From positions 1 to 64,000 of the IMG/VR virus record IMGVR_UViG_3300027770_000025: a stretch of 64,000 bases of DNA; one strand, 5' to 3'. How positions within the stretch are numbered: position 1 is the first letter of the stretch; each line of letters begins with the position of its first letter. The position numbers were made by a program, and so were the translations under genes. The notes below the pieces were generated by a model. It made no database searches, was not told where the DNA came from, and saw only the letters and a list, made by a program, of their open reading frames with translations. Positions 1 to 55,522 of this stretch are shown here, piece after piece.

Positions 1-3000
1 TAGTTCCTGCTGATCCTGAAGTACCTGATGTACCACTAGTTCCTGAGGTTCCTGAAGTTCCGCTAGTTCCTGCTGATCCTGAAGTTCCACTAGTTCCTGC
101 TGATCCTGAGGTACCCGATGTACCACTGGTTCCTGATGTACCACTAGTTCCTGCTGATCCTGAAGTTCCGCTAGTTCCTGCTGATCCTGAAGTTCCGCTA
201 GTTCCTGCTGATCCTGAAGTACCCGATGTACCACTAGTTCCTGATGTACCACTAGTTCCTGCTGATCCTGAAGTACCTGATGTACCACTAGTTCCTGAGG
301 TTCCTGAAGTTCCACTAGTTCCTGAGGTTCCTGAAGTTCCGCTAGTTCCTGCTGATCCTGAAGTTCCGCTAGTTCCTGCTGATCCTGAAGTACCCGATGT
401 ACCACTAGTTCCTGAAGTTCCACTAGTTCCTGCTGATCCTGAAGTTCCACTAGTTCCTGCTGATCCTGAAGTTCCACTAGTTCCTGAAGTTCCACTAGTT
501 CCTGCTGATCCTGCTGATCCTGAAGTTCCTGCTGATCCTGAAGTACCACTAGTTCCTGAAGTACCCGATGTACCACTGGTTCCTGATGTACCACTAGTTC
601 CTGCTGATCCTGAAGTTCCACTAGTTCCTGAGGTTCCACTAGTTCCTGCTGATCCTGAAGTTCCTGAAGTTCCACTAGTTCCTGCTGATCCTGCTGATCC
701 TGAAGTACCTGATGTACCACTAGTTCCTGCTGATCCTGAAGTTCCGCTAGTTCCTGCTGATCCTGAGGTACCCGATGTACCACTAGTTCCCGAAGTTCCG
801 CTAGATCCGCTAGATCCTGTTTTTCCACTAGATCCTGCTGATCCTGCTGATCCTGAAGTTCCACTAGTTCCTGCTGATCCTGAGGTACCCGATGTACCAC
901 TAGTTCCTGAAGTTCCACTAGTTCCTGCTGATCCTGAAGTACCACTAGTTCCTGAAGTTCCACTAGATCCAGCAGCTCCATCAGACATCCAACTAACTGA
1001 ATAGGTTTCTGTTCCTCCCCACTGTCCATTCCCAACTACAAAAGTAAGAGGTATTGTCCAAAAGTTATTGAGGACGGTATAGAACAAGTTTCCAACTGTA
1101 AATATACCAAAAACACTAGTATCATTAACCTGCGTTATTTGTAAACGAGAAGGTTTACCCGCGGCTTGATTAGCATCTAAAGCATTAAACCAACCAGTAT
1201 ACGCTCCAGTTAAAGAAGAATCTGAAATATCTATTGATGTGGTATCGGCAAAATTAGCGTTGTCGCCAATGATAATACCGGAGCCCATCTCCGGTGGGTT
1301 ATTAGTCTCCCACCTTCCTGAGTTTGCACCATCAATTCCTGGATCCCCTTGAGATCCTTGAGCTCCCGATGTACCACTTGAACCGCTAGACCCCGATGTT
1401 CCTGAAGAACCGCTTGAACCTGAAGTTCCTGAAGAACCGCTAGTACCACTAGTTCCTGCTGATCCTGAAGTACCACTAGTTCCTGAAGTACCACTAGTTC
1501 CTGAAGTTCCACTAGTTCCACTAGTTCCTGCTGATCCTGATGTACCTGATGTACCACTAGTTCCTGAAGTTCCGCTAGTTCCTGCTGATCCTGAAGTACC
1601 ACTAGTTCCTGCTGATCCTGAAGTACCTGATGTACCACTAGTTCCTGAAGTTCCACTAGTTCCTGCTGATCCTGAAGTACCTGATGTACCACTAGTTCCT
1701 GAAGTTCCACTAGTTCCTGAAGTACCTGAAGTTCCACTAGTTCCTGAAGTTCCACTAGTACCTGCTGATCCCGAAGTACCTGAAGTTCCTGCTGATCCTG
1801 AAGTACCACTAGTTCCTGAAGTACCACTAGTTCCTGAAGTTCCACTAGTTCCACTAGTTCCTGCTGATCCTGATGTACCTGCTGATCCTGATGTACCTGA
1901 AGTTCCACTAGTTCCTGAAGTTCCTGCTGATCCTGAAGTACCTGCTGATCCTGAAGTACCTGCTGATCCTGAAGTACCACTAGTTCCTGAAGTACCTGAT
2001 GTACCACTAGTTCCTGCTGATCCTGAAGTTCCACTAGTTCCTGAAGTACCTGCTGATCCCGAAGTACCTGAAGTTCCTGCTGATCCTGAAGTACCACTAG
2101 TTCCTGAAGTACCACTAGTTCCTGAAGTTCCACTAGTTCCACTAGTTCCTGCTGATCCTGATGTACCTGCTGATCCTGATGTACCTGAAGTTCCACTAGT
2201 TCCTGAAGTTCCTGCTGATCCTGAAGTACCTGCTGATCCTGAAGTACCTGATGTACCACTAGTTCCTGAAGTTCCACTAGTTCCTGAAGTACCTGAAGTT
2301 CCACTAGTTCCTGCTGATCCTGAAGTACCTGCTGATCCTGAAGTACCACTAGTTCCTGAAGTACCTGAAGTACCACTAGTTCCTGCTGATCCTGAAGTAC
2401 CTGATGTACCACTAGTTCCTGAAGTTCCACTAGTTCCTGCTGATCCTGAAGTACCTGAAGTTCCTGCTGATCCTGAAGTACCACTAGTTCCTGAAGTACC
2501 ACTAGTTCCTGATGACCCATTAACCCCTGATGTTCCCGCTGATCCGGAATTTCCAGATGTACCACTAGATCCTGCAGTTCCATCTAGTCCGGCTATTCCT
2601 GAAGTACCTGCTGATCCTGAAGTACCACTAGTTCCTGAAGTTCCTGCTGATCCTGATGTACCACTAGTTCCTGATGATCCTGAAGTACCACTAGTTCCTG
2701 CTGATCCTGAAGTACCTGAGGTACCTGCTGATCCTGAAGTTCCTGATGTTCCTGCTGATCCTGAAGTTCCGCTAGTTCCTGATGTTCCTGCTGATCCTGA
2801 TGTACCGCTAGATCCGCTAGATCCTGTTTTTCCACTAGATCCTGCTGATCCTGCTGATCCTGAAGTTCCGCTAGTTCCTGCTGATCCTGAAGTACCCGAT
2901 GTACCACTAGTTCCTGAGGTTCCACTAGTTCCTGCTGATCCTGAAGTACCTGATGTACCACTAGTTCCTGAGGTTCCTGAAGTTCCGCTAGTTCCTGCTG

Positions 3001-6000
3001 ATCCTGAAGTTCCACTAGTTCCTGCTGATCCTGAGGTACCCGATGTACCACTAGTTCCTGAAGTTCCACTAGTTCCTGCTGATCCTGAAGTTCCTGATGT
3101 ACCACTAGTTCCTGAAGTTCCACTAGTTCCTGCTGATCCTGAAGTTCCGCTAGTTCCTGCTGATCCTGAAGTACCTGATGTACCACTAGTTCCTGAAGTT
3201 CCACTAGTTCCTGCTGATCCTGAAGTTCCGCTAGTTCCTGCTGATCCTGAAGTACCTGATGTACCACTAGTTCCTGAGGTTCCTGAAGTTCCGCTAGTTC
3301 CTGCTGATCCTGAAGTTCCACTAGTTCCTGCTGATCCTGAAGTACCTGATGTACCACTAGTTCCTGAGGTTCCACTAGTTCCTGCTGATCCTGAAGTTCC
3401 GCTAGTTCCTGCTGATCCTGAAGTACCTGATGTACCACTAGTTCCTGAGGTTCCACTAGTTCCTGCTGATCCTGAAGTTCCGCTAGTTCCTGCTGATCCT
3501 GAAGTACCACTAGTTCCTGCTGATCCTGAAGTACCTGATGTACCACTAGTTCCTGAAGTTCCACTAGTTCCTGAAGTTCCTGCTGATCCTGAAGTACCTG
3601 ATGTTCCACTAGTTCCTGATGATCCATTAACTCCTGAAGTTCCTGCTGATCCTGAAGTTCCTGCTGATCCTGAAGTTCCTGAAGTTCCTGAAGTTCCACT
3701 AGTTCCTGCTGATCCTGAGGTACCTGCTGATCCTGAGGTACCACTAGTTCCTGAAGTACCTGCTGATCCTGAGGTACCACTAGTTCCTGAAGTACCTGCT
3801 GATCCTGAGGTACCACTAGTTCCTGAGGTTCCACTAGTTCCTGATGATCCGTTAACTCCTGAAGTACCTGCTGATCCTGAAGTACCTGATGTACCACTAG
3901 TTCCTGAAGTTCCACTAGTTCCTGCTGATCCTGAAGTTCCTGAAGTTCCTGAAGTTCCTGCTGATCCTGAGGTACCACTAGTTCCTGCTGATCCTGAAGT
4001 TCCACTAGTTCCTGCTGATCCTGAAGTTCCACTAGTTCCTGATGATCCCGAAGTACCTGATGTACCACTAGTTCCTGAAGTTCCACTAGTTCCTGCTGAT
4101 CCTGAAGTTCCTGAAGTTCCTGAAGTTCCTGAAGTTCCTGAAGTTCCACTAGTTCCTGAAGTTCCACTAGTTCCTGATGATCCCGAAGTACCACTAGTTC
4201 CTGAAGTTCCACTAGTTCCTGAAGTACCTGCTGATCCTGAAGTTCCACTAGTTCCTGAGGTTCCACTAGTTCCTGATGATCCGTTAACTCCTGAAGTTCC
4301 TGCTGATCCTGAAGTTCCCGAAGAACCATTTGCTCCCGATGTTCCTGCTGATCCTGAAGTTCCTGAAGAACCACTTGCTCCTGATGTTCCTGCTGATCCT
4401 GAAGTTCCAGAAGAACCATCTGCTCCTGATGTTCCAGAAGAACCATCTGCTCCTGAAGTTCCAGAAGATCCACTTGCTCCTGAAGTTCCCGAAGAACCAT
4501 TTGCTCCCGATGTTCCTGCTGATCCTGAAGTTCCTGAAGAACCACTTGCTCCTGATGTTCCTGCTGATCCTGAAGTTCCAGAAGAACCATTTTCTCCTGA
4601 TGTTCCAGAAGATCCACTTACTCCTGATGTTCCAGAAGATCCACTTGCTCCTGAAGTTCCCGAAGAACCATTTGCTCCCGATGTTCCTGCTGATCCTGAA
4701 GTTCCTGAAGAACCACTTGCTCCTGATGTTCCTGCTGATCCTGAAGTTCCAGAAGAACCATTTTCTCCTGATGTTCCAGAAGATCCACTTGCTCCTGAAG
4801 TTCCCGAAGAACCATTTGCTCCCGATGTTCCTGCTGATCCTGAAGTTCCTGAAGAACCACTTACTCCTGATGTTCCTGCTGATCCTGAAGTTCCAGAAGA
4901 ACCATTTTCTCCTGATGTTCCAGAAGATCCACTTGCTCCTGATGTTCCAGAAGATCCACTTGCTCCTGAAGTTCCCGAAGAACCATTTGCTCCCGATGTT
5001 CCTGCTGATCCTGAAGTTCCTGAAGAACCACTTGCTCCTGATGTTCCTGCTGATCCTGAAGTTCCAGAAGAACCATTTTCTCCTGATGTTCCAGAAGATC
5101 CACTTGCTCCTGATGTTCCTGCTGATCCTGATGTTCCAGAAGATCCACTTGCTCCTGAAGTTCCCGAAGAACCACTTGCTCCTGATGTTCCCGAAGAACC
5201 ACTTGCTCCTGAAGTTCCTGCTGATCCTGATGTTCCCGAAGAACCATCTGCTCCTGATGTTCCCGAAGAACCGTTTTCTCCTGATGTTCCTGCTGATCCT
5301 GAAGTTCCTGAAGAACCACTTGCTCCTGATGTTCCTGCTGATCCTGAAGTTCCAGAAGAACCATCTGCTCCTGATGTTCCAGAAGAACCATCTGCTCCTG
5401 ATGTTCCCGAAGAACCATCTGCTCCTGAAGTTCCAGAAGATCCTGCTGCTCCTGATGTTCCTGCTGATCCTGATGTTCCAGAAGAACCATCTGCTCCTGA
5501 AGTTCCAGAAGAACCACTTGCTCCTGATGTTCCAGAAGATCCGTTTGCTCCTGATGTTCCAGAAGATCCATCTGCTCCTGAAGTTCCAGAAGATCCACTT
5601 GCTCCTGAAGTTCCCGAAGAACCATTTGCTCCCGATGTTCCTGCTGATCCTGAAGTTCCTGAAGAACCACTTGCTCCTGATGTTCCTGCTGATCCTGAAG
5701 TTCCAGAAGAACCATTTTCTCCTGATGTTCCAGAAGATCCACTTGCTCCTGATGTTCCTGCTGATCCTGATGTTCCAGAAGATCCACTTGCTCCTGATGT
5801 TCCCGAAGAACCACTTGCTCCTGAAGTTCCCGAAGAACCACTTGCTCCTGAAGTTCCTGCTGATCCTGATGTTCCCGAAGAACCATTTGCTCCTGAAGTT
5901 CCCGAAGAACCGTTTGCTCCTGAAGTTCCAGAAGAACCACTTGCTCCTGAAGTTCCCGAAGAACCACTTGCTCCTGAAGTTCCCGAAGAACCACTTGCTC

Positions 6001-6868
6001 CTGATGTTCCTGCTGATCCTGAAGTTCCAGAAGAACCATCTGCTCCTGATGTTCCCGAAGAACCATCTGCTCCTGAAGTTCCAGAAGATCCTGCTGCTCC
6101 TGAAGTTCCAGAAGTTCCAGAAGATCCTGCTGATCCTGATGTTCCTGCTGATCCTGATGTTCCAGAAGAACCATCTGCTCCTGATGTTCCCGAAGAACCA
6201 TCTGCTCCTGAAGTTCCAGAAGATCCTGCTGCTCCTGAAGTTCCAGAAGATCCTGCTGCTCCTGATGTTCCTGCTGATCCTGATGTTCCAGAAGAACCAC
6301 TTGCTCCTGAAGTTCCAGAAGATCCACTTGCTCCTGATGTTCCAGAAGATCCACTTGCTCCTGATGTTCCAGAAGATCCACTTGCCCCTGAAGTTCCCGA
6401 AGAACCACTTGCTCCTGATGTTCCCGAAGAACCACTTGCTCCTGAAGTTCCTGCTGATCCTGATGTTCCCGAAGAACCGTTTGCTCCTGATGTTCCCGAA
6501 GAACCGTTTGCTCCTGATGTTCCCGAAGAACCACTTGCTCCTGATGTTCCCGAGGAACCTGCTGCTCCTGATGTTCCCGAGGAACCTGCTGCTCCTGATG
6601 TTCCCGAGGAACCTGCTGCTCCTGATGTTCCCGAAGAACCACTTGCTCCTGAAGTTCCTGCTGATCCTGATGTTCCCGAAGAACCATTTGCTCCTGAAGT
6701 TCCCGAAGAACCGTTTGCTCCTGATGTTCCCGAAGAACCTGCTGCTCCTGATGTTCCCGAAGAACCTGCTGCTCCTGATGTTCCCGAGGAACCTGCTGCT
6801 CCTGATGTTCCCGAAGAACCACTTGCTCCTGAAATACCACTAGTTCCACTGCTTCCACTTCCCGTTCC
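1..6868 (-). repeat. 9-nt period coding repeat (e.g. GGAACTAGT, GGATCAGCA, GGAACTTCA) interrupted at ~980-1330
   Basis: Directly visible tandem 9-mers. Unit composition switches near 4320, from GAS/GAN/GEN/GAD+GSS to GTS/GSA. Confidence 0.95.
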
Positions 6869-7798
6869 TCCTGATATAGTTATTGTGGTATATCCGCTAG
6901 AATCAGTTACAGACGAAACGCCAGATCCAGTAAAGTTTAGACCAGTAACACCTACTCCTATCTGGGATCCACTAGAATAAGTATTTATAGCAGATCCTGA
7001 TCCCCCTGATCCACCAGGTATTGTAACCGTTACCGTATTGTATTGATCCCCAGTTTCAGTTACTGTAACACCAGCACCGGTAAATCCGACATACCAAGCT
7101 CCGTTGAAATGCTGTCCCGTTTGTCCAATGATTACTGGAACATAATCAGAAATTGCAAGTACGTCTATATTATAAGCAGCCTCTGCTATACCAGCTGGTA
7201 GATCCGGATATACATCATTCGAAACAGCATTTTGATATGTCCTATAATCAGATTGCTGAGATATTGCACTATAAGTAGCATTAGTAGGTACTCTATTAAG
7301 AGAACTGTATGCACCATCCTCATCATAAGTACAGAAGAAATTAATGTATTGATAAGATGGTTTATCGGTTATTTTGTTAATTACAAAGGTATTAAATACC
7401 CCCGAAATAGGATTAAATGATCCAGCATCTGTTGCTATGTTTGTAACTAAAAAACCCTCCAATAAATCAGCAGTTGTATAAATGCCGTTTACCTCAAGAT
7501 AAGTTCCTTCACAATAAAATACGCCGTCACCACACGATGTGGTAATGGTAACACCAGTATTAGTTGCTGTTCCATTGGCGGACATTACGAATGAAGAAGC
7601 ACCGTAATTAACAGAAATTACGGTAGTTGATGAGGGAATTCCTGTACCTGTTACAGCAAGACCTGGTATAATGAGATTAATATTAGATACGCTAGTAACT
7701 ACATTACTTCCGTTTGATACGTTTCCTGTTATCTGTGGTCCGTTGGTAAAAAATTCAGGTATAAATAATTGACCGGTTATTCTAGGTTGACTCCCCAT
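1..7798 (-). CDS. Giant Gly-X-Y (Ser/Thr-rich) repeat fibre protein, >=2599 aa, 3' end outside window
   Basis: ATG at 7798 (MGSQPRITGQLFIPEFF...). The frame was spot-checked at 7798, ~2580, ~1370 and position 4 and stays in phase. ~310-aa unique N-terminus, then GTS/GSA/GSS/GAS/GAN triplets, with a ~120-aa globular insert at ~980-1330. Absent from the ORF track because no stop lies in the window; the track's ELQ/QDQQ ORFs are its shadows. Confidence 0.9.
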   Translation of the reverse strand, partial: MGSQPRITGQLFIPEFFTNGPQITGNVSNGSNVVTSVSNINLIIPGLAVTGTGIPSSTTVISVNYGASSFVMSANGTATNTGVTITTSCGDGVFYCEGTYLEVNGIYTTADLLEGFLVTNIATDAGSFNPISGVFNTFVINKITDKPSYQYINFFCTYDEDGAYSSLNRVPTNATYSAISQQSDYRTYQNAVSNDVYPDLPAGIAEAAYNIDVLAISDYVPVIIGQTGQHFNGAWYVGFTGAGVTVTETGDQYNTVTVTIPGGSGGSGSAINTYSSGSQIGVGVTGLNFTGSGVSSVTDSSGYTTITISGGTGSGSSGTSGISGASGSSGTSGAAGSSGTSGAAGSSGTSGAAGSSGTSGANGSSGTSGANGSSGTSGSAGTSGASGSSGTSGAAGSSGTSGAAGSSGTSGAAGSSGTSGASGSSGTSGANGSSGTSGANGSSGTSGSAGTSGASGSSGTSGASGSSGTSGASGSSGTSGASGSSGTSGASGSSGTSGASGSSGTSGSAGTSGAAGSSGTSGAAGSSGTSGADGSSGTSGADGSSGTSGSAGTSGSAGSSGTSGTSGAAGSSGTSGADGSSGTSGADGSSGTSGSAGTSGASGSSGTSGASGSSGTSGASGSSGTSGANGSSGTSGANGSSGTSGSAGTSGASGSSGTSGASGSSGTSGASGSSGTSGSAGTSGASGSSGTSGENGSSGTSGSAGTSGASGSSGTSGSAGTSGANGSSGTSGASGSSGTSGADGSSGTSGANGSSGTSGASGSSGTSGADGSSGTSGSAGTSGAAGSSGTSGADGSSGTSGADGSSGTSGADGSSGTSGSAGTSGASGSSGTSGSAGTSGENGSSGTSGADGSSGTSGSAGTSGASGSSGTSGASGSSGTSGASGSSGTSGSAGTSGASGSSGTSGENGSSGTSGSAGTSGASGSSGTSGSAGTSGANGSSGTSGASGSSGTSGASGSSGTSGENGSSGTSGSAGTSGVSGSSGTSGSAGTSGANGSSGTSGASGSSGTSGENGSSGTSGSAGTSGASGSSGTSGSAGTSGANGSSGTSGASGSSGTSGVSGSSGTSGENGSSGTSGSAGTSGASGSSGTSGSAGTSGANGSSGTSGASGSSGTSGADGSSGTSGADGSSGTSGSAGTSGASGSSGTSGSAGTSGANGSSGTSGSAGTSGVNGSSGTSGTSGTSGTSGSAGTSGTSGTSGTSGTSGSSGTSGTSGTSGTSGTSGTSGTSGTSGSAGTSGTSGTSGTSGTSGSSGTSGTSGSAGTSGTSGSAGTSGTSGSAGTSGTSGTSGSAGTSGTSGTSGTSGTSGSAGTSGVNGSSGTSGTSGTSGTSGSAGTSGTSGTSGSAGTSGTSGTSGSAGTSGSAGTSGTSGTSGTSGSAGTSGSAGTSGVNGSSGTSGTSGTSGSAGTSGTSGTSGTSGTSGTSGSAGTSGTSGSAGTSGTSGSAGTSGTSGTSGTSGTSGSAGTSGTSGSAGTSGTSGTSGTSGTSGSAGTSGTSGSAGTSGTSGTSGTSGTSGTSGSAGTSGTSGSAGTSGTSGTSGTSGTSGSAGTSGTSGSAGTSGTSGTSGTSGTSGSAGTSGTSGTSGTSGTSGSAGTSGTSGSAGTSGTSGTSGTSGTSGTSGSAGTSGTSGTSGTSGTSGSAGTSGTSGSAGSAGSSGKTGSSGSSGTSGSAGTSGTSGTSGSAGTSGTSGSAGTSGTSGSAGTSGTSGSSGTSGTSGSAGTSGTSGTSGSAGTSGIAGLDGTAGSSGTSGNSGSAGTSGVNGSSGTSGTSGTSGTSGSAGTSGTSGSAGTSGTSGTSGTSGTSGSAGTSGTSGTSGTSGTSGSAGTSGSAGTSGTSGTSGTSGTSGTSGTSGTSGSAGTSGSAGTSGTSGTSGTSGSAGTSGSAGTSGTSGTSGTSGTSGTSGTSGSAGTSGTSGSAGTSGTSGTSGSAGTSGTSGTSGTSGTSGSAGTSGSAGTSGSAGTSGTSGTSGTSGSAGTSGSAGTSGTSGTSGTSGTSGTSGTSGSAGTSGTSGSAGTSGTSGTSGTSGTSGTSGTSGTSGTSGTSGSAGTSGTSGTSGTSGTSGSAGTSGTSGSAGTSGTSGTSGTSGTSGSAGTSGTSGTSGTSGTSGTSGTSGSAGTSGTSGSSGTSGSSGSSGTSGSSGSSGTSGAQGSQGDPGIDGANSGRWETNNPPEMGSGIIIGDNANFADTTSIDISDSSLTGAYTGWFNALDANQAAGKPSRLQITQVNDTSVFGIFTVGNLFYTVLNNFWTIPLTFVVGNGQWGGTETYSVSWMSDGAAGSSGTSGTSGTSGSAGTSGTSGTSGTSGTSGSAGTSGTSGSAGSAGSSGKTGSSGSSGTSGTSGTSGTSGSAGTSGTSGSAGTSGTSGTSGSAGSAGTSGTSGTSGSAGTSGTSGTSGTSGSAGTSGTSGTSGTSGTSGTSGTSGSAGTSGSAGSAGTSGTSGTSGTSGSAGTSGTSGSAGTSGTSGTSGTSGTSGSAGTSGTSGSAGTSGTSGTSGTSGTSGTSGTSGTSGTSGSAGTSGTSGTSGTSGTSGSAGTSGTSGSAGTSGTSGSAGTSGTSGTSGTSGTSGSAGTSGTSGSAGTSGTSGTSGTSGTSGTSGSAGT

Positions 7799-29889: not shown

Positions 29890-29893
29890 TTTT

Positions 29894-43058: not shown

Positions 43059-43076
43059 TATTTTTATTTGGCTATT

Positions 43077-43913
<837 letters not shown>

Positions 43914-43952
43914 TTAATGTAATTTTATTTAATACTATATATTCTGAATGAT

Positions 43953-44699: not shown

Positions 44700-44729
44700 G
44701 CTTATTGTTTCACGAGATAAAAAAATATT

Positions 44730-45853: not shown

Positions 45854-46285
45854 TTATTTTGTGTTTAGGTATTCTTCTATCTCAGCTTCGTTTGCTAATC
45901 TAATAGGAACGAATAACGCAAATCCATTATCATCTTCGAAATGATTACACGTATCTAAACGAAATCCAAATTTATACCTCCAATGTTCAAAAACATTTTC
46001 TTCTGCATTCCATTTACCTACTTTTGCTCTTCTATACTCGCCATAGTAGAATTGGTTGTCAACTAGATCTGCCTTTGGTATAGCACCAGCAGCTATTAAT
46101 TTTGGTACATAGAATTCTCTATACTCCTTTTCATCAACACGTGGAATAACAGGAACGTCCTCTAGTTTTTCTATCTTTGGTAACGTCAGCCAATACTCCT
46201 TCATCCTTGCTTCTCTTTCCGCTTTTAACTTGAGTCTTTCAGCTTCAAATTTGAGCAGGTACTCTTCTTTTATTCTATCTTCCAT
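45854..46285 (-). CDS. Hypothetical phage protein
   Basis: Start moved to MEDRIK (46285) because the longer ORF overlaps tRNA-Cys; C-terminal HFEDDNGFALFVPI. Confidence 0.7.
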   Translation of the reverse strand: MEDRIKEEYLLKFEAERLKLKAEREARMKEYWLTLPKIEKLEDVPVIPRVDEKEYREFYVPKLIAAGAIPKADLVDNQFYYGEYRRAKVGKWNAEENVFEHWRYKFGFRLDTCNHFEDDNGFALFVPIRLANEAEIEEYLNTK

Positions 46286-46311
46286 GACTTTTATTTTTAT
46301 TTGTTTATTTG

Positions 46312-46385
46312 AGGCACCGGTAGGATTCGAACCCACGTCTTCCGCTTTGCAGGCGGTCATCTAGAAGCCACTCGGCCACGGTGCC
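46312..46385 (-). tRNA. tRNA-Cys(GCA)
   Basis: GGCACCG/CGGTGCC acceptor, U73, CCGC-CTGCAAA-GCGG, GTGGG-TTCGAAT-CCTAC; D arm irregular. Confidence 0.8.
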
Positions 46386-46419
46386 ATTGTTATATGTTTT
46401 CTTTATCCCAAGTTATGAG

Positions 46420-46492
46420 ATCCTATAGAGGGATTCGAACCCCCGACATTCTCATTAAAATGAGATGCTCTAACCAGCTGAGCTAATGTAGA
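46420..46492 (-). pseudogene. Degenerate tRNA-Lys(TTT)-like
   Basis: Good D and T arms, but the anticodon loop is only 6 nt (TTTTAA) and the acceptor stem is mispaired. Confidence 0.65.
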
Positions 46493-46518
46493 AAAAAGTT
46501 TCGGGATAAAAAAATATT

Positions 46519-47972: not shown

Positions 47973-48890
47973 TTATTCAGCTACGTCCTTTAAGAACATA
48001 TCGATCACCTCCTGAAATCTAGGATCGATACCTATTCTCAAAGCTGCTGTTTTTTTAATTTCATTCTGACGCTCTTCTTCAAACAAATGCGAAGCTTGAC
48101 GGTAGTTAGCCTGCCATTCCTCTTTTGCCTTGCTGTAATCGCTAATGACTTTTTGATTCACCTCATTAACAGAAGCTTCCTTAACCGCATTATCTTTAGC
48201 AATTCTAGCGTTCTCGGTGGTTACTAAATTCTTAACCTTCGCCTTGAAGTAGTTAACACGTTGCTCGTGAGCTCTATGAACTCCAGCAAGTTGTTCATGT
48301 AAATCACCTAACTCTTCAGACGTGTGATGTACACTAACCTTAAGTGGAGTTTTCTTTCCAGACTCTACTTCGATCCACTCTAGAGTTTTAAGTGTAGGTA
48401 ACTCTGATCTTAAGTTATCTAATTTACCCCCTTTGTGAATGAATTGTCCTACGTGAGATGCAAAAGCTTCCGCTTCTAAATACTCGTTGTATTCGGCTAA
48501 AGAAAGTTGGCTCCAAGCCCAATCTTCGTTAACTGAATCATCTATTTCTGCACTTTGAAGTTCACCGCATTTAGGAATCTCGATATCAAATTCCATGCGG
48601 GTGTTTCTAAGTCCATTAAGCATCTCTTCTTTGGCCTTAATGTTTTCCATTAAAAAAGCCTGGGTAGCGTGAAGCTTTGATTTATCTGCTAGCAGATCAA
48701 CCACGTTTTCTGGCATCTTTTTGCCCGGAGTTTCGATATAGGTCTCCTCTCCTATTTTAAGGACCTTTTCAACGTTGTTGATGTCTCTTAATTTAAAAGA
48801 GATGTCTCTTGATCTTTGGTTGCAAAGATTAGAGATTGACTGTGCTTGAGACATTGATAGTCCCTTCGAAGCTAAAGAATTTTTTCTCAT
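47973..48890 (-). CDS. Uncharacterised helical/coiled-coil protein upstream of the candidate ncRNA
   Basis: 305 aa, E/K/A-rich, N-terminus GLSMSQAQSISNLC; no recognisable catalytic motif. Confidence 0.85.
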   Translation of the reverse strand: MRKNSLASKGLSMSQAQSISNLCNQRSRDISFKLRDINNVEKVLKIGEETYIETPGKKMPENVVDLLADKSKLHATQAFLMENIKAKEEMLNGLRNTRMEFDIEIPKCGELQSAEIDDSVNEDWAWSQLSLAEYNEYLEAEAFASHVGQFIHKGGKLDNLRSELPTLKTLEWIEVESGKKTPLKVSVHHTSEELGDLHEQLAGVHRAHEQRVNYFKAKVKNLVTTENARIAKDNAVKEASVNEVNQKVISDYSKAKEEWQANYRQASHLFEEERQNEIKKTAALRIGIDPRFQEVIDMFLKDVAE

Positions 48891-49371: not shown

Positions 49372-49821
49372 TTATAAAATTTGTTTATTAATTGTTCCAT
49401 TTATCTCATAATCCCATCTAACCCTTATGCATGTTTCTGGTCTTTTACAGAGCTTAAGATAGAGATTTATATAACCCATGATATGGCAACACCCTATGGG
49501 ATTTGCAGAGTGTGTATAACATTGTGGCAGATCTTGTCCGGTAGATTTAGAATACTCTATTAACCATTTAGCAGCATCTAGACCGGTCTTTTCTTTTATC
49601 TTTGAATAGTCAATTACGTAAGTTTCCCTAACCTCTTCAACATAATGGCGGGTAGCAGAAAAATCTAGATCGTGATCTAGTGTTATAATTTCAATGTTAT
49701 CCAATCCGGTTTTTTCTACCAGATCGATAAACTCTTTGAAGTTCTTAACCACAACCCATTCGGTATCAGCTGATGGTGATTCTAATGGTGTTCTCTGGTC
49801 GTCTAGATAGATTGAAATCAT
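49372..49821 (-). CDS. Cyclic-phosphate-processing receiver-domain protein
   Basis: IYLDD.R.P, W.VVKN..EF, ITLDHDL, KTG.D.AKWL, HSANP.G. Confidence 0.75.
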   Translation of the reverse strand: MISIYLDDQRTPLESPSADTEWVVVKNFKEFIDLVEKTGLDNIEIITLDHDLDFSATRHYVEEVRETYVIDYSKIKEKTGLDAAKWLIEYSKSTGQDLPQCYTHSANPIGCCHIMGYINLYLKLCKRPETCIRVRWDYEINGTINKQIL

Positions 49822-50825
49822 TTTTTACTTTTTATATTCTCTATGGATTTTCCTATTTCAGCATCGTCGATCATTCCATGGTAGAACTGAACCCTTTCAG
49901 AATCTTCACACTTCTGTAGCAAATTATCGAATATGTGTGCATTCATTATATTGCTGTTCGATTCCACATAATCTACAACATCAGCATATAGGGTGTTAAC
50001 GAAAATTCTTCCGTAATTTTGTGTTGCATTTCTTCTCCATAGCGTAACATTTATTGCAGTCTCTTCAGCTATAGGATAAAACTCTCGGTCAAAGCTATTT
50101 AGATACTCGTTCTCAGTTATAGATTTCCACTCTAATAAGAAGTCCCCGCATTTTTCATTGAAGCTTAATGCACAGCTGTAGACATAAGTCATTGTTGGGT
50201 TCTTAACTCCATAATATCTCATTAGCCTGCTGTAGTCCTTTATGTCAAGATTCTCTAACTCATGCTCATATACTTTTATCGGGAAATCCTTACCATCAAA
50301 TATGATCTCATATGATTGATCTTCGTGGTTGATTCTTTTAATGTTACCGAATGCTGATGTTGCTCCGGATGTGAAATAGTTAACCCTTGTACCTCTAAAT
50401 TCGTCCCTTATTATAACTCTACCCTCTAGATTAAATTTAGGAAAAGCATTATTAGGATCTATCATGTTATAATAATAAGGCAAATCCCAATTTCCAACAG
50501 AAAGAAGTGGATAATTAAAATCATGTACAAAGAAGTTAGGATCAAATCTTCTGCTGATCACTATATCTGAATCAAGAAATAATATGTCACCACCGAAGGT
50601 TCTTAAAGCATCCAAACAAATTCCGGGTTTATAAAACGGAAATCTTTTCATCTTAGGATCTAATGGCCAGTGTTTTTTTGTCAGATTTGGGTATTGAAGA
50701 TCTGACTCAAATCCCACTGTATAATATAGGAATTCAATATTATCATGACCATGTAAGTGGAGTGACTGTAACAAGTAGTCTACTTGATATTCGTAATTCT
50801 TGTCTGTGAATGCTAATATTTTCAT
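49818..50825 (-). CDS. Putative glycosyltransferase
   Basis: YKP, LFLDSD, EETAINV.LW, FYHG. Confidence 0.6.
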   Translation of the reverse strand: MKILAFTDKNYEYQVDYLLQSLHLHGHDNIEFLYYTVGFESDLQYPNLTKKHWPLDPKMKRFPFYKPGICLDALRTFGGDILFLDSDIVISRRFDPNFFVHDFNYPLLSVGNWDLPYYYNMIDPNNAFPKFNLEGRVIIRDEFRGTRVNYFTSGATSAFGNIKRINHEDQSYEIIFDGKDFPIKVYEHELENLDIKDYSRLMRYYGVKNPTMTYVYSCALSFNEKCGDFLLEWKSITENEYLNSFDREFYPIAEETAINVTLWRRNATQNYGRIFVNTLYADVVDYVESNSNIMNAHIFDNLLQKCEDSERVQFYHGMIDDAEIGKSIENIKSKK

Positions 50826-50828: not shown

Positions 50829-52007
50829 TTATCTTGCTTTTGGGTTTAATATAAAGGTGATCTTAGTGAAATCTATAAAATACCACCAAGAAAACCCAGC
50901 ATTATGAATAGCAGATTCCATATCGCTTCTAATATCTAATGCCTCAATTTCTAGTGTTACTATAATTTGTTCTAGTGAAGGATCAATTGTTGATAACCTA
51001 TTGGTAAATGTTTCTATATCCTGAATATTCTTAATAGAAAAAATTAGGTGCGAAGGGTGCTCTATTTTTTTATTAAACCAAAAATCGTGATCGAAATAGA
51101 GTTCCCCTATTCTATTTCTGTCCCTCGCATTTAGATTGCTGTTATAGTACTCCACTCTTGCTCTGTATGTTATACTACCAAGATTTGAATAGTACATCTG
51201 ATATAAAGAATCAAAAGAACCGTCATAGTGATAATGTATAGATTCTAGGGTTTTCCTGCTTTTTCTGCTTTCTGCCTTAGTCATCATACCTTTATCCTCT
51301 GCTTCTATATCGGATAAAGAAACTCCCCTGCTCTGCCACATAGGTCCTGATACAGATCCCACTCTGTAGGTATAATCATGTAGTGTTCTAGGTAGGCATA
51401 GCATTTTACCACACTCCTCGTAATTTAGAATTTTTAGAATATCAGCGCTCATGCTATGTGTGTACTCGCCTTCTCTTGCTATCTCCCCCCTATGTAATAT
51501 AGCAGATTTTCTGAAACATCTGGCGTCTCCCATTACGGAATGAACATTGTTTTTTAGACCCTCTATAAAATTAGACGATCCGTTGTATTTTATATACTTA
51601 GCACCTATTGAATGCCCGGTTACATTTCCATCTTTCATTACTGATGTTGCTCCTATAATAGATAATTCGGGGAACCTTTCAAGATGAACTAAGTAACATT
51701 CAAGTAGCTTAGGATACATAATATCATCAGAATCTATAGTCAGTATGAATTCTCCACTGGATTCTATTAATGGCAAATTCCAGTAATAGTGATTTTTCCA
51801 TTTAGGATAGATCACTCTTACTCTGCTATCATTTTTTTCGAGATTCTTCAAAGTCTCCAGAACTAAAGGATCCTCGCTGAAGTCGTCGCACACAAGCCAT
51901 TCCCAATTGGTGTGGGTTTGGTTTTTTATTGATTCGTAGACCTTTTCTAAATCATCTATATAATTATAGAATCCTGTGAGTATGCTAAATTTGGTTTTTT
52001 TCTCCAT
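50829..52007 (-). CDS. GT2 glycosyltransferase
   Basis: SIKNQTHTNWEWLVCDDFS, GEFILTIDSDD. Confidence 0.85.
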   Translation of the reverse strand: MEKKTKFSILTGFYNYIDDLEKVYESIKNQTHTNWEWLVCDDFSEDPLVLETLKNLEKNDSRVRVIYPKWKNHYYWNLPLIESSGEFILTIDSDDIMYPKLLECYLVHLERFPELSIIGATSVMKDGNVTGHSIGAKYIKYNGSSNFIEGLKNNVHSVMGDARCFRKSAILHRGEIAREGEYTHSMSADILKILNYEECGKMLCLPRTLHDYTYRVGSVSGPMWQSRGVSLSDIEAEDKGMMTKAESRKSRKTLESIHYHYDGSFDSLYQMYYSNLGSITYRARVEYYNSNLNARDRNRIGELYFDHDFWFNKKIEHPSHLIFSIKNIQDIETFTNRLSTIDPSLEQIIVTLEIEALDIRSDMESAIHNAGFSWWYFIDFTKITFILNPKAR

Positions 52008-53117
52008 TTAATATTCGTAATTTGTTAGCTGCTTAAATTTATGTAACGCACTTCCTATAACCTGGTGCATGTCGTAGTATTTATACTCTGCCAATCTACC
52101 GCCAAAGATATATTTGGGCGATATCTCGTTTGAAAGCTTTTGGTAATCTATATACCTTAGATTGTTCTCCGAGTTATTCACCGGATAATATCTTTCCTTA
52201 CCAGGTTCCCATGAATCCGGATATTCCCTAGTTATTATTGTGGAATCACTTTTTGTAAATTCGAAGTGCTTGTGTTCGCAGATTCTGGTGTATGGTATTT
52301 CCTCCTCTGTGTAGTTAATTAAAGCATTACCCTGATAATCGGGAATATTTAGTTCTTCTGTTTCGAATCTTAGACTTCTATATTCTAGTGGACCAAATTG
52401 ATACCCAAAGAATTCATCAATAGCTCCGGTGAAGATTATCGTTTTAGCCTCGCTCTCGAATTGCTCTTTATTCTCAAAGAAATCAACGCCAAGTCTAACC
52501 TCAACACCTTCCTGCATTTTCTCGATCATCTTGGTATATCCGCCAATAGGTATACCCTGATAGGTGTCATTAAAATAATTATCATCAAAGGTTAATCTAA
52601 TAGGAAGTCTTCTGATAATCGAAGAAGGCAATTCTTTAGGATCTCTACCCCATTGCTTCTTAGTGTACCCGTATATGAATTTTTTATAGATCTCTTCCCC
52701 AACCTGAGATAGTATCCATTCCTCTAGATTTTTAGGTGAATCTGAATGTATCTTTACTGATTCTAGGATTTTGTTAGCCTCTTCAGGAGTCTTAACACCA
52801 AATAACTGATATAGAGTAAATAAGTTTATAGGGAAAGAATATAAGTCCCCTTTATAACTCACTTTAGGCCTGTTTACGAAGTTATTAAAGCTTGCGAATC
52901 GGTTTACATAGTTCCAGATCCGATCGTCCGATGTGTGGAATATATGTGGTCCGTATTTGTGTACATTAATACCGTTAACATTCTCGCTATAAGCATTTCC
53001 TGCATTGTGAGACCTTTTATCTATTATTAAACATTTGTACCCTTTTTCGTTTGCTTGCTGTGCAAAGGTGGATCCGAATAAACCGGATCCTACTATAACG
53101 AAATCGTATTTATACAT
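52008..53117 (-). CDS. glf: UDP-galactopyranose mutase
   Basis: IVGSGLFG, HKYGPHIFHT, YTKKQWG, YQGIP..GY, LEYRSL, GRLAEYKYYDM. Confidence 0.96.
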   Translation of the reverse strand: MYKYDFVIVGSGLFGSTFAQQANEKGYKCLIIDKRSHNAGNAYSENVNGINVHKYGPHIFHTSDDRIWNYVNRFASFNNFVNRPKVSYKGDLYSFPINLFTLYQLFGVKTPEEANKILESVKIHSDSPKNLEEWILSQVGEEIYKKFIYGYTKKQWGRDPKELPSSIIRRLPIRLTFDDNYFNDTYQGIPIGGYTKMIEKMQEGVEVRLGVDFFENKEQFESEAKTIIFTGAIDEFFGYQFGPLEYRSLRFETEELNIPDYQGNALINYTEEEIPYTRICEHKHFEFTKSDSTIITREYPDSWEPGKERYYPVNNSENNLRYIDYQKLSNEISPKYIFGGRLAEYKYYDMHQVIGSALHKFKQLTNYEY

Positions 53118-53128
53118 TTCTTTATTTT

Positions 53129-53992
53129 TTAAAACCATTTATTTTCTGATTCAAAGTAATATTTATAGTCATTAAGATAGAAATATTTCCTCGGGTTTAG
53201 GTATTGACTAACTCCTTCTGCATTACCTCTATATAAACACACCCACATAGAAACATTACAGCTGTTTAATATCAACTTAGAGCATCTACTTAAGATTAGA
53301 GAGATTGCCATAAATTCAACACCAAAATTAGTCCTCCCCCCATTTTCTATAGTCCATACCACTTGCCATTCGTAGCTCTTGTTTATTACTGGGAGTTCCG
53401 GTATAAATATAGAATCGGGATATATGGACATCGCATGATCTAAAAATTCTTTCTCGTCAGTTTGAATCAAGATTTTATATTTTGGGTTCTCTTTAAGTAA
53501 GATTCCTATCTTATTGATGTATTCTTCATAACTAGGTGGATTAGCCTCCATTAACTTATCATTTCCCCTATAATATACACCTATAGTTTCCTCTGTATTG
53601 ATTTCATATTTTGCTAGAAAAGAGTTCATTTTTTCTAGCACTCTTTCTGATGGATCAAAATATGAATTTATTATCGGTAATATCTCTTTGTAGTTTATTC
53701 TTTTATATGGGCTGAATTGACCAAGGTATGTAAAATCACCATCTTCATATTTCATAAAATCTGTAAATAGTATAGTTTTACCGACCCCTGTTATTTCTGA
53801 TCCACGAGATTTAAAAAATTCACACCATATATCTGAATTGATTGATTCGTCTTCCTTATACCATTCCATTAAAGATGCCGTGGATATAAAGGGGAATTCA
53901 CATTCCTCGTTATATTTCGCTATTATCTGGTTTAATGTAACTGTGCATGTGCTAAAAAAACCGGCAGTAAAAACTGGTGATAAATTAGACAT
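53129..53992 (-). CDS. Fucosyltransferase-like (NodZ/GT23-type)
   Basis: GFFS, IGVYYRGNDK, QTD, LSRC..LI...NVS. Confidence 0.6.
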   Translation of the reverse strand: MSNLSPVFTAGFFSTCTVTLNQIIAKYNEECEFPFISTASLMEWYKEDESINSDIWCEFFKSRGSEITGVGKTILFTDFMKYEDGDFTYLGQFSPYKRINYKEILPIINSYFDPSERVLEKMNSFLAKYEINTEETIGVYYRGNDKLMEANPPSYEEYINKIGILLKENPKYKILIQTDEKEFLDHAMSIYPDSIFIPELPVINKSYEWQVVWTIENGGRTNFGVEFMAISLILSRCSKLILNSCNVSMWVCLYRGNAEGVSQYLNPRKYFYLNDYKYYFESENKWF

Positions 53993-54761
53993 TCTTTATT
54001 AGATTTGGATATCGTAATTTATGATCTGCTCTTTTCTTTCTTTCAGTTGCATATTCTTCGCTCTCCTCCATCCAAGGAAGTTTTAAATATTCAGTTGAAC
54101 TCCATTCATCCTCTATCACATTAGTTCTTATGTAGTAATAAGAAGCTATAGAAATTCTTGGACTTTCCCCTTGGTAAGGATAAGGATGTCCGTGGAAATT
54201 GTTTCTAGTATCAAACAAAACCCAACGATTAAATTTAGGCTCGATCACTTCTACAGCTCCTTCGGAGTTCCAGAACTCCAATTCTCCACCGTCTCCAGGT
54301 TTCCAGCTGCTGTTCAGGTATCCGATAAGATTGATGCATCTTAGCATCTGTTTATCGTCATTGTAAGTGGTGGGAAGAATATTGAAGTCTTTATGGATTG
54401 ATAAATATCCTCCTTCCTTAGTTTTATGTAATCCCCCGCCCCATCTTTTTTCGTCAACCAAAAGATCTTCGATTCCTGTTATTTCTGATACTGCGTCAAT
54501 AAATTTATCCGAATGAACATACCGGAATAACGATACCAGATTCTCCGGCATTTTAGACTGGTCATTCATTGCATATTTCTCGTACTCGAAATATGGGTTT
54601 GCATAACGCACAAATTCGGAATCGTCAATCACTAAAAATTCATTCTGGCATTTCAGAATGAATTCCTCGTCAAATAAGTTGTCTATTATAACAAACTTAG
54701 GTGATTCTTTTGTGTATTTATTTTTTGCTTCCTGTGATAATACTGAGCTGTGACTTATCAT
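53985..54761 (-). CDS. 2OG-Fe(II) oxygenase
   Basis: GGGLH...GGYLSIHKDFN, GGELE.W, PKFNR..LF, FHG, R.SIA.YY. Confidence 0.9.
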   Translation of the reverse strand: MISHSSVLSQEAKNKYTKESPKFVIIDNLFDEEFILKCQNEFLVIDDSEFVRYANPYFEYEKYAMNDQSKMPENLVSLFRYVHSDKFIDAVSEITGIEDLLVDEKRWGGGLHKTKEGGYLSIHKDFNILPTTYNDDKQMLRCINLIGYLNSSWKPGDGGELEFWNSEGAVEVIEPKFNRWVLFDTRNNFHGHPYPYQGESPRISIASYYYIRTNVIEDEWSSTEYLKLPWMEESEEYATERKKRADHKLRYPNLIKNV

Positions 54762-55522
54762 AACATATTTTTGTTGATATGATCTTCTACAGCATTATAG
54801 CGGAAAGAATTCGGGGTATCATGAACCATCATTGAGCTTTCCCATTGACGGGTATACCACATATGAATAGCTATATCATCAGACCCCTTATCAACTCTTG
54901 GATTAGTTGACTTAAAGCGTTCATCAAAGTGAGGATATAGATAATTGAATTTTCTTCCCTTCTCCTTTAACATCCATAGGATCATATAATAAGGCTCTTG
55001 CTCATAAGAACAGTTTTCATCATTGCCCATTATTTCGTGCGGGTACAAGAAGTCTGAGCGGTGTCTATCGGCATTATAGATAATACCTTTATTGTTTCTC
55101 CACCCGTCTACATCATGCTTAAACGTAACCTCTTCAGTATCAAAATTAAGGGTATTAAAGTGATCCACATTACCAACCATAAAGAAAGAATTTACGGCAA
55201 CTGGGTTAGCGCCTCTGTAATGGTGATATCCATCGGATACTGCAGAAAGAGTAAGGTCTTCATCCGCCATCTTTTGAATAAGCTTTAATAGCTCTTCCCT
55301 GCTGTTAAGAAAACAATCCTCATCCAAATGCACAAACCATTTGGCGCTTGTGTTCTTAAGTGGGTTCAACCAATGGAACCAAGCATATGGCCAATTATTT
55401 CTTCCGTCAACCACAATATGCTCGCTTTCAGGGAAATGTTTTTTGACAAGTTGTTTTTGGTAATTTAACCACTTTGTATATAAAGTGGTGGTGACAAATA
55501 GAATGTCTTGATCTTTAATCAT
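54758..55522 (-). CDS. Putative glycosyltransferase
   Basis: HLDED, EPYY, HMWY.R. Start moved to MIKDQD (55522) to avoid the tRNA. Confidence 0.6.
   Translation of the reverse strand: MIKDQDILFVTTTLYTKWLNYQKQLVKKHFPESEHIVVDGRNNWPYAWFHWLNPLKNTSAKWFVHLDEDCFLNSREELLKLIQKMADEDLTLSAVSDGYHHYRGANPVAVNSFFMVGNVDHFNTLNFDTEEVTFKHDVDGWRNNKGIIYNADRHRSDFLYPHEIMGNDENCSYEQEPYYMILWMLKEKGRKFNYLYPHFDERFKSTNPRVDKGSDDIAIHMWYTRQWESSMMVHDTPNSFRYNAVEDHINKNML

Follow-up and report, generated by a model that had tools for sequence, protein, structure and literature searches.

A TibC-like glycosyltransferase cassette beside giant Ser/Thr-rich collagen-like fibre genes of a jumbo phage

The genome from which the DNA analysed here derives encodes giant collagen-like fibres rich in serine and threonine, and we consider it probable that these are O-glycosylated in the cytoplasm of the host, most likely by a cassette in which a homolog of the glycosyltransferase TibC is paired with a family 1 glycosyltransferase (GT1). 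The window, meaning the whole stretch of 64,000 bases that was analysed, comprises bases 1–64,000 of a 348,582-bp IMG/VR record (IMGVR_UViG_3300027770_000025) that is rated complete by CheckV. This source genome is designated G000, and the other G and L labels denote related genomes and loci with which it was compared; on its gene content it is a T4-like jumbo phage. Glycosylation of the fibres is likely because the enzyme family is a specific one, the catalytic residues are conserved, and the linkage to fibre genes is strong on comparison between viruses. What is observed directly is gene content, homology, residue conservation and genomic linkage; from these we predict the substrate, the sugar and the glycosylation itself. 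An original prediction made from positions 1–55,522 had proposed cytoplasmic O-glycosylation of the fibres together with about 25 glycan genes in this region. The first part is supported by the cassette, which lies outside the window, while the glycan genes of the window were not tied to the fibres by comparison.

The fibre genes and the TibC-like cassette

The fibre-type genes of the window are as follows, with lengths in amino acids (aa).

2–7798, minus strand: p1, the 5′ part of a giant collagen-like fibre gene, at least 2,599 aa (Pfam Collagen, E = 3.7e-285), open to the contig start
7814–10180, minus strand: p2, a fibre protein of 789 aa with Mtd_N followed by GSS/GTS collagen-like blocks alternating with globular domains
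10316–10825, minus strand: p3, a small Mtd_N protein of 170 aa without a long collagen run
43080–43913, minus strand: p4, a fibre protein of 278 aa with Mtd_N and a short GPT/GAT collagen run, having Thr rather than Ser at Y

The p1 protein begins with a 314-aa N-terminal domain, which is followed by 1,845 aa of unbroken Gly-X-Y, a globular insert of ~115 aa and further GTS repeats that run off the contig start. The long uninterrupted Gly-X-Y periodicity that is a hallmark of collagen is therefore present in p1, yet enrichment of proline or hydroxyproline at X and Y was not found in its repeats, proline lying outside the six commonest residues at both positions. The window part contains 812 serine, 477 threonine (together 1,289), 779 glycine and just 17 proline residues. 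The triplets include 341 GTS, 94 GSS and 89 GSA, and across 723 triplets Y is Ser in 554 (77%), while X is Thr in 420 and Ser in 212. The N-terminal domain found no relatives in IMG/VR. The p2 gene lies 15 bp upstream of p1 and encodes 317 Ser/Thr, so that the two Ser/Thr repeat fibre genes originally predicted are both borne out. The giant gene is located between a gp15-like gene (11218–11964, minus strand; predicted tail sheath stabiliser, PF16724, 26.5 bits) and a neck-protein-like gene that is borderline, just under the Pfam cut-off. The gp15-like gene places the fibre genes in the neck/tail-terminator module. Additional tail-fibre proteins, not rich in serine, are probably encoded by three paralogous open reading frames (ORFs) of 520–580 aa at G000 244461–249517 (minus strand), each of which has 33 aa of Gly-X-Y close to its N-terminus.

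At the opposite end of the contig (G000 347417–348580), and on the same strand, is found the end of a collagen-like ORF with GAQ and GSS/GTS triplets, terminated by a Peptidase_S74 intramolecular chaperone domain (E = 7.5e-15). In the collinear genome G026 a single giant fibre gene also spans the contig ends, and the opening 100 bases are found again ~290 bp from the end. From the common strand, the content of the reading frames and the synteny with G026 we infer that the two pieces in G000 are one fibre gene, broken by the assembly inside the repeats. The joined gene would run from the N-terminal domain through more than 2,100 aa of Gly-(Thr/Ser)-Ser and the GAQ triplets to the S74 chaperone, which would drive trimerization of p1. 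Should the repeats form a triple helix, the fibre would measure at least 0.5 micrometre, and a rise of 0.286 nm per residue would give the part of p1 in the window a length of ~0.6 micrometre.

The S74 domain is directly followed by a cassette on the same strand; together with the C-terminal part of the fibre gene it occupies G000 341,790–348,580, outside the window. Family 2 glycosyltransferases are abbreviated GT2, and other families (GT) correspondingly.

G000 346680–347255, same strand as the fibre: DUF6445
G000 345418–346677, same strand as the fibre: GT2
G000 344235–345437, same strand as the fibre: GT2
Between GT2 344235–345437 and GT1, same strand as the fibre: small ORF
G000 342979–343932, same strand as the fibre: GT1
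G000 341790–342968, same strand as the fibre: TibC-like (GT9-like) protein, followed by a T4 neck-protein-like gene

The genes form a string on one strand in the order p2, p1, DUF6445, GT2, GT2, small ORF, GT1 and, last, TibC-like. The expression signals fit a single late transcript running from p2 to the TibC-like gene, judged from weak scans for motifs and hairpins. The motif GATATATA is found upstream of 55 genes against 2.3 expected, including those of the capsid, the sheath, the neck-like protein and p2. It looks like a phage late promoter, differing from the TATAAATA of T4, which is not enriched in the genome. GATATATA and its variant AATATATA lie at –81 and –38 upstream of p2; AATATATA also precedes p4, and GATATATA precedes the neck-protein-like gene after the TibC-like gene. 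Between p1 and the cassette these weak scans revealed neither a GATATATA-type motif nor a terminator-like hairpin, and a terminator-like hairpin does follow the TibC-like gene.

TibC is a cytoplasmic autotransporter heptosyltransferase of E. coli that hyperglycosylates the serines of TibA, and the enzymes of its family modify serine (PMC4358343). On the evidence of sequence and modelled structure the phage protein is a clear homolog of this BAHT family (bacterial autotransporter heptosyltransferases), distinct from the GT9 enzymes that act on lipopolysaccharide (LPS). It aligns with TibC (PDB 4rb4/4rap) over residues 62–381 with a phmmer E-value of 2.3e-53. The top PDB match of an AlphaFold2 model (predicted local distance difference test, pLDDT, 71.6) is TibC, with a template modelling (TM) score of 0.77–0.79, E = 1.5e-27 and 31% identity, compared with TM scores of 0.43–0.55 and 13% identity for the LPS heptosyltransferases WaaC and WaaF. 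The region of the N-terminal beta-barrel is modelled with strands at 50–55, 61–67, 84–88 and 94–99, and residues 1–47 have pLDDT <50.

The functional residues of TibC have been assigned as Asp110 for the catalytic base, Thr226, Lys230, Arg286 and Trp305 for sugar binding, and Cys339, Cys342, Cys358 and Cys370 for an iron finger (PMC4358343). In our alignment Asp110 corresponds to D120 of the phage protein, within an LGD motif, Thr226, Lys230 and Trp305 to T236, K240 and W306, and the four cysteines to C341, C344, C360 and C372, where iron binding is predicted. All of these are invariant in eight phage homologs. Arg286, which contacts the heptose, is retained as arginine in this enzyme and in its closest relative within the alignment, L045 (93% identical). 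The TibC-like gene lies beside a Ser-rich fibre gene, as expected for a BAHT enzyme, and transfer from donor to acceptor is predicted. Serine as the target fits well, because it occupies most Y positions of p1 and TibC-family enzymes modify serine.

We envisage that, late in infection, the TibC-like enzyme would add a first sugar to serine hydroxyls of the repeat chain in the host cytoplasm. This sugar would then be extended or decorated by the paired GT1 and by lineage-specific enzymes, i.e. the GT2s in this genome, FkbM and other methyltransferases in relatives, and a sulfotransferase and APS kinase in G026. Dense O-glycosylation would produce a mucin-like fibre, requiring neither a lipid carrier nor an exporter.

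Linkage of TibC-like genes to fibres across viruses

How general is the association between TibC-like genes and fibres? A search of IMG/VR with an alignment of TibC-like domains shows that at least 569 viral contigs encode relatives. Linkage was counted in the best 80 TibC-like loci of these (37–100% identity), using flanks of 10 kb. A Ser/Thr-rich collagen-like ORF is present within 10 kb of the TibC-like gene in 56 of the 80 loci, and another kind of Gly-X-Y ORF in 6 more. By comparison, none was found at 80 control loci of the major capsid gene, taken from the same clade and having the same mean locus length (Fisher p = 5e-24). The association remains after dereplication into clusters, in 34/54 at 90% identity, 22/33 at 70% and 5/6 at 50%. 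There are at least five different arrangements, such as adjacent genes on the same strand separated by 14–80 bp, convergent genes 0.4–2 kb apart, and an upstream location at 4.7–6.8 kb. The TibC-like domain is often fused into proteins of 700–1,458 aa that also contain GT1 and methyltransferase domains.

The cassette differs in content in each relative examined. In the complete relative G001 (38% median identity) two fibre genes are followed by a 2-oxoglutarate (2OG) oxygenase, a GT1-FkbM protein, a methyltransferase and a methyltransferase-TibC-like fusion. In G026, likewise complete and related at genus level (60% median identity; L299 5587–13470), the slot between fibre and neck contains a sulfotransferase, an APS kinase, a cytidylyltransferase-like ORF, a 312-aa GT9 and a 966-aa GT1-TibC-like-FkbM protein. 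This variation hints at sulfated or methylated glycans. In a set of 17 large related genomes, every genome with a GT1 also has the TibC-like gene, and vice versa. Only G029 and G033 have neither, and in G029 the two collagen-like ORFs that were examined are short, with triplets of GAT/GST/GPT type. The pairing of a TibC-like gene with a fibre extends to a 735-kb huge phage and to a cultured phage, Microcystis phage Mel-JY01 (PP395634.1, L403).

The plus strand of Mel-JY01 has, at 2–3049, an open collagen-like frame of at least 1,016 aa with GTS/GSS repeats. The GenBank record has the strand of this fibre gene wrong, placing antisense ‘hypothetical proteins’ with proline at every third residue on the minus strand (1–651 and 739–2298). 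Some 1.7 kb downstream of the fibre ORF is a 1,226-aa ‘methyltransferase FkbM’, the C-terminus of which is a TibC-like domain.

Giant ORFs of the Ser/Thr collagen-like type are common in IMG/VR, occurring in at least 120 contigs. Among the matches listed, contigs with more than 1,000 aa of repeats are mostly fragments rated 12–47% complete, from which parent genomes of ~250–350 kb are estimated. Repeat genes appear to break assemblies, so that many contig ends of the clade fall inside them, and calls of a direct terminal repeat such as that of G026 may stem from overlapping repeats within the fibre gene. At the loci closest to this genome (L139–L144 and others of the set L138–L217) the upstream flank stops at a contig end 4–8 kb from the TibC-like gene, and several have a collagen-like ORF that is cut off by that end.

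A number of observations weigh against glycosylation of the fibres by the TibC-like cassette. TibC and AAH are known to act on beta-helical passenger domains of autotransporters, not on collagen-like repeats (PMC4358343). The position of Arg286 is Ala or Thr in most of the other phage homologs, and the beta-hairpin thumb (the Phe265/Val266 region) by which TibC forms a dodecamer is deleted, with alignment gaps at TibC 258–262 and 265–267, so that a dodecameric ring is not expected. A genome-wide search for the ADP-heptose pathway found no SIS isomerase (SIS_2) and no PfkB kinase; it gave two cytidylyltransferase-like matches elsewhere, at 178 kb and 232 kb. Given the variable Arg286 and the lack of ADP-heptose genes, the sugar may differ from heptose. 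A second GT1/TibC-like pair, at G000 186975–191261, is not beside a collagen gene; here a GT4-like domain is fused to a TibC-like domain, adjoining a GT1-FkbM protein. Moreover, 24 of the 80 loci have no Ser/Thr-rich collagen ORF in their flanks, and a distance of 27–45 kb separates the TibC-like gene from the known collagen ORF in 5 of 10 fragment records. Lastly, the join of the contig ends is based on strand, frame content and synteny with G026 rather than on reads, and the terminator scan is weak, with 8 sites against 4.7 expected.

Several of these points would be accommodated if the fibres were bare, and the TibC-like/GT1 cassette acted on a host protein or on some other protein of the virion, such as that of the capsid, the sheath or another fibre. 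The proximity would then stem from a hypervariable host-recognition region, and T4-like tail-fibre regions do collect unrelated genes (PMC7029224). The beta-helical repeats of the known substrates, the second cassette located away from collagen genes, and the 24 loci that lack a nearby collagen ORF would all be in keeping with this. Yet the linkage persists through rearrangements, fusions and divergence (37–100% identity), and it is specific to Ser-rich Gly-X-Y ORFs, which at several loci lie 14–80 bp away on one strand. We regard bare fibres as quite improbable, and continue to favour the fibre as the target of the cassette.

Glycan islands and other genes of the window

Most of the remaining glycan genes of the window fall into two islands, the first at 22.5–40.3 kb and the second at 49.8–55.6 kb.

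Island 1
22571–23578, minus strand: gmd, GDP-fucose pathway (Pfam/NCBIfam; G026 counterpart 83% identical)
23545–24453, minus strand: fcl-like, GDP-fucose pathway (Pfam/NCBIfam; G026 counterpart 63% identical)
24485–25297, minus strand: ORF of phrog_15655, GT-A-like (GT7C/GT2-like) by a language-model lead
25293–26057, minus strand: GT6-family glycosyltransferase (E = 4.7e-30)
26020–26844, minus strand: HtrL/YibB-family protein (Pfam/NCBIfam)
26835–27806, minus strand: GT4-like ORF, below the Pfam threshold
27779–28315, minus strand: Methyltransf_24 gene (Pfam)
28409–29029, minus strand: Methyltransf_24 gene (Pfam)
29029–29922, minus strand: ORF without assigned function
29897–30772, minus strand: ORF without assigned function (phrog_13607)
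30776–31456, minus strand: DUF3431 protein (Pfam)
31465–32010, minus strand: third methyltransferase (Pfam)
31991–35085, minus strand: four ORFs without a Pfam match, the next two entries among them
32724–33689, minus strand: ORF, GT-B-like by a language-model lead
33692–34420, minus strand: phrog_13607 paralog of 29897–30772
35205–36212, minus strand: NAD-dependent sugar epimerase/dehydratase (SDR; Pfam/NCBIfam)
36218–37285, minus strand: ORF with a weak HAD-like match
37257–38141, minus strand: APH/choline-kinase-type kinase-like ORF (weak match)
38129–38977, minus strand: GT11-family (fucosyltransferase-type)
39082–39738, plus strand: GT7 (beta-1,4-galactosyltransferase-type)
39745–40293, plus strand: HAD hydrolase

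Island 2
49821–50825, minus strand: ORF of no assigned function
50832–52007, minus strand: GT2 (Pfam)
52011–53138, minus strand: glf (Pfam/NCBIfam)
53132–53992, minus strand: ORF of no assigned function
53988–54761, minus strand: 2OG-FeII_Oxy_3 oxygenase (Pfam/NCBIfam)
54761–55567, minus strand: ORF with a weak GT2 language-model lead

Beyond 1–55,522
61709–63445, minus strand: GT2 protein of 579 aa, with homologs in 13 of the 80 TibC-like loci

From these assignments the islands are predicted to make GDP-fucose and UDP-galactofuranose, and to encode further soluble GTs and methyltransferases. The ORFs at 36218–38141, together with the HAD hydrolase at 39745–40293, may activate a phospho-sugar or phospho-alcohol substituent, the matches all being weak. 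GT6 (25293–26057), GT11 (38129–38977) and the GDP-fucose genes (22571–24453) occur together. In some bacteria GT6 and GT11 with GDP-fucose synthesis generate epitopes like those of the H and A/B blood groups. No promoter-like motif was recognized ahead of the islands. For ten ORFs that lack a Pfam assignment NCBIfam gave nothing useful, and PHROGs gave only families of unknown function. Besides the three with language-model leads, seven ORFs in 1–55,522 match no Pfam or NCBIfam family; phrog_13607, whose function is not known, is matched by two of the seven.

The inventory that had been predicted for 1–55,522 is reproduced in large part. The assignments of gmd, fcl-like, glf, the SDR epimerase and the 2OG oxygenase all have support from Pfam or NCBIfam. 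About half of the ‘dozen or more’ GTs are supported by Pfam, namely GT6, HtrL/YibB, GT11, GT7 and one GT2, with a GT4-like ORF below threshold, and three further language-model leads (24485–25297, 32724–33689 and, weakly, 54761–55567) make a dozen plausible. We find three methyltransferases (27779–28315, 28409–29029 and 31465–32010) in place of the four proposed. The region is not a single system as had been suggested, being interrupted by T4-type genes at 11–21 kb and by unrelated cargo at 40.8–49.8 kb. Nor does the number of GTs follow the length of the repeats to a significant degree: Pfam Collagen matches correlate weakly and non-significantly with GT2, GT1, GT9 and Epimerase matches (Spearman 0.25–0.46, p = 0.06–0.34, n = 17) over 17 large related genomes that are not independent, where the Collagen counts are lower bounds because contigs break in repeats.

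Are the islands tied to the fibres? They could instead remodel the O-antigen or capsule of the host using its carrier, flippase and ligase, and be unrelated to the fibres, and we hold this to be possible. Its purpose might be to block superinfection, or to prevent re-adsorption of progeny, and such a tentative role is compatible with glycosylation of the fibres by the TibC-like cassette. This is the prevailing reading for comparable genes in T4-like marine phages (PMC7029224) and jumbo phages (PMC7824862). The make-up of the islands is that of an O-antigen locus, in which genes for nucleotide diphosphate (NDP) sugars and several soluble GTs occur within one variable locus. The gmd and fcl-like genes form the conserved core of island 1. 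G026 keeps these, ORF 24485, glf, GT11, ORF 54761, GT7 and the HAD hydrolase, and lacks GT6, HtrL, the methyltransferases, the epimerase and others; from island 2 it retains glf and ORF 54761 alone. Such a core shared by G000 and G026, alongside genes that differ between them, is the pattern of a variable glycan locus. The sequence of G025, a fragment with a TibC-like protein 93% identical to that of G000, does not reach the island region.

The distribution of island genes among relatives also favours the host surface as their target. Of 80 loci with GT7 homologs, just 2 have a Ser/Thr collagen ORF, and none has a TibC-like gene. G029 and G033 contain gmd/fcl-like pairs and GT2s without the TibC-like/GT1 pair. 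G001 has longer fibres (3,733 and 870 aa) yet lacks nearly all the island genes, and G036, G037 and G039, which also have long fibres with few or no island-type genes, possess the TibC-like/GT1 pair without an epimerase-family gene. On the other side, homologs of island families (Methyltransf_24, the GT2 types of 50832 and 61709, and ORF 49821) recur at 24 of the 80 TibC-like/fibre loci and at none of the 80 controls. Furthermore, the N-terminus of the island GT4-like ORF (26835–27806) is 41% identical over 79 aa to that of the 783-aa GT-plus-TibC-like fusion of this genome. The islands may feed or extend the same fibre glycans, a weak link that we consider possible and about as likely as a role at the host surface.

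Modification of the host surface would require all the membrane steps to come from the host, as no initiating transferase, flippase, polymerase or ligase is encoded. Neither PF02397 (Bac_transf) nor PF00953 (WecA/MraY family) has a match across the 348,582-bp genome, in searches for which control genomes were positive. No flippase, polymerase or ABC-2 permease was found; in a crude hydropathy scan real ORFs have at most five predicted transmembrane segments genome-wide. Four or five such segments occur in a few short ORFs, there is no protein of transporter size with 6–14, and the only ORF exceeding five is a repeat-artefact frame. None of the glycan enzymes has an N-terminal hydrophobic anchor. 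The predicted absence of a Wzx/Wzy/ABC exporter and of a priming transferase therefore holds throughout the genome, and the GTs are without anchors. We counted the lack of a priming transferase, of a flippase-size membrane protein and of membrane anchors in favour of fibre glycosylation, but this does not separate a fibre target from one on the host surface, because soluble GTs could borrow the lipid carriers and export of the host.

It is also conceivable that the glycan genes modify the phage DNA, by glycosylation of hypermodified bases, or make a small secreted metabolite. T4-type phages glucosylate their own DNA. One language-model neighbour cluster of ORF 32724–33689 includes the T4 glucosyltransferase family at rank 71, and secondary-metabolite clusters have been raised for cyanophages (PMC7824862). 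Against this, GDP-fucose and UDP-galactofuranose synthesis with GT6, GT7 and GT11 are hallmarks of oligosaccharide assembly rather than base modification, and the TibC family acts on protein, making DNA or a metabolite an extremely improbable destination.

The remainder of the window contains genes of other kinds, nearly all window genes being carried by the minus strand. T4-type genes identified by Pfam at 11–19 kb comprise the gp15-like gene, SbcC/SbcD-like gp46/47, DnaB-like gp41 and UvsX. The closest UvsX proteins of GenBank phages, from uncultured huge phages and Lak phages, have 35–39% identity, and a near-identity DNA search of GenBank phages with window 10–30 kb gave no match. An alternative genetic code, considered in view of the Lak phages among the distant relatives, was ruled out since all genes are open under table 11. 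The following genes and sites lie outside the islands.

40.8–49.8 kb: non-glycan genes including ClpB-like, GlnA-like and tRNA (Pfam and other assignments)
40844–45722, 49375–49821 and 59964–60521: cargo set with a ClpB-like two-AAA ATPase (76% identical in G026), a 330-aa glutamine-synthetase-like protein, a DUF481 outer-membrane-type protein with signal peptide, a cREC receiver domain and a rhomboid-like membrane protein
46419–46493: tRNA-like gene with a two-base anticodon (‘tt’; ARAGORN), inside a small tRNA cluster (His, Cys, Arg)
45857–46360: ORF whose 5′ end overlaps tRNA-Cys, so that its start is probably wrong

A second over-represented upstream motif, TTTTTTTATCCCG followed by TAnnTTTG, precedes ~25 small genes. 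The two over-represented motifs are located at G000 77,000–120,000 and elsewhere, and within the window upstream of 47976–48890 and 57226–57930. The TAnnTTTG box is one that we take to resemble the –7 box of Bacteroidota sigma-A promoters, and because the motif holds a –7 box of this type it suggests a host among the Bacteroidota.

Significance and comparison with known systems

In our survey of the literature we found no paper linking TibC-type enzymes or heptosyltransferases to phage fibres or collagen-like proteins. To our knowledge, a few mycobacteriophages are the only phages for which glycosylation of virion proteins has been demonstrated to date, and the TibC family is known only as the partner of autotransporter adhesins in Gram-negative pathogens. 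If true, the link between the TibC family and giant Ser/Thr fibres would extend both fields. It would provide a concrete enzyme–substrate pair for the glycosylation of phage fibres, with a cultured carrier in Mel-JY01, and a possible answer to how very long proline-free collagen-like helices are stabilized or kept soluble. It would also reopen the standard view that the GTs of phage host recognition serve only to alter host LPS.

Taken together, we tentatively picture a widespread group of jumbo phages, with Mel-JY01 and 735-kb huge phages among its kin, having fibres of up to half a micrometre that could be hyperglycosylated on serine by a TibC-type enzyme in the host cytoplasm, forming a mucin-like ‘glycocalyx’ of viral making. 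The fast-changing cassette of GT1, GT2, methyl- and sulfotransferases might diversify the glycans, the gmd/fcl/glf islands might add fucose and galactofuranose, and the glycans rather than the protein might carry specificity for host or environment. As a whole this picture is speculative, and we would not expect all of it to hold.

Certain giant eukaryotic viruses offer one parallel. The fibrils of Mimivirus type and the capsids of chloroviruses are modified by virus-encoded NDP-sugar pathways (in chloroviruses gmd and fucose synthase), soluble GTs and methyltransferases, arranged in clade-specific clusters. The jumbo phage shares the possession of its own NDP-sugar genes, soluble GTs and methyltransferases, but the eukaryotic viruses have eukaryotic hosts and unrelated fibril proteins, and we know of no TibC-type enzyme in them. 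Pro-poor Gly-X-Thr repeats with O-glycans are found in BclA of the Bacillus exosporium, where methylated sugars occur, and in the cuticle collagen of Riftia, where galactosylation of threonine stabilizes the triple helix. Unlike the phage fibre, where Y is Ser, the acceptor in these is Thr at Y; their enzymes are unrelated or unknown, and they are cellular rather than viral.

Among phages, the hypervariable regions of pelagimyophages and cyanomyophages (PMC7029224) and the LPS/capsule-type clusters of jumbo phages (PMC7824862) likewise combine tail-fibre genes (collagen repeats, Mtd) with many GT and sugar-nucleotide genes, and lack exporters. In contrast to our proposal, the GTs were there assigned to a change of the host O-antigen, and a link between TibC-like and collagen genes is not described (PMC7029224, PMC7824862). 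As reported for mycobacteriophages Che8 and Rita by Freeman et al. (2023), cited in PMC11256854, virion capsid proteins are glycosylated. On that account phage-encoded GTs modify the phage's own virion proteins inside the cell, as we propose here. Our system differs in its enzyme family and in its presumed target, a giant repeat fibre, and here the modification is predicted from genes. The tail tube is a further target of glycosylation in mycobacteriophage virions.

The closest known system is that of the BAHT enzymes, TibC/TibA and AAH/AIDA-I of pathogenic E. coli (PMC4358343). The presumed phage substrate is a collagen-like Gly-X-Ser viral fibre instead of a beta-helical autotransporter; the phage enzyme is without the thumb, has a variable Arg286 position and is not accompanied by ADP-heptose genes; and a GT1 constantly accompanies it, as a partner or in fusion, as FkbM methyltransferase domains often do. 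Yet both employ a homologous soluble cytoplasmic GT with the catalytic Asp, three of the four sugar-binding residues and the four iron-finger Cys, and in each the gene of the enzyme lies beside that of a long repetitive Ser-rich surface fibre, which in the known system is hyperglycosylated on many serines.

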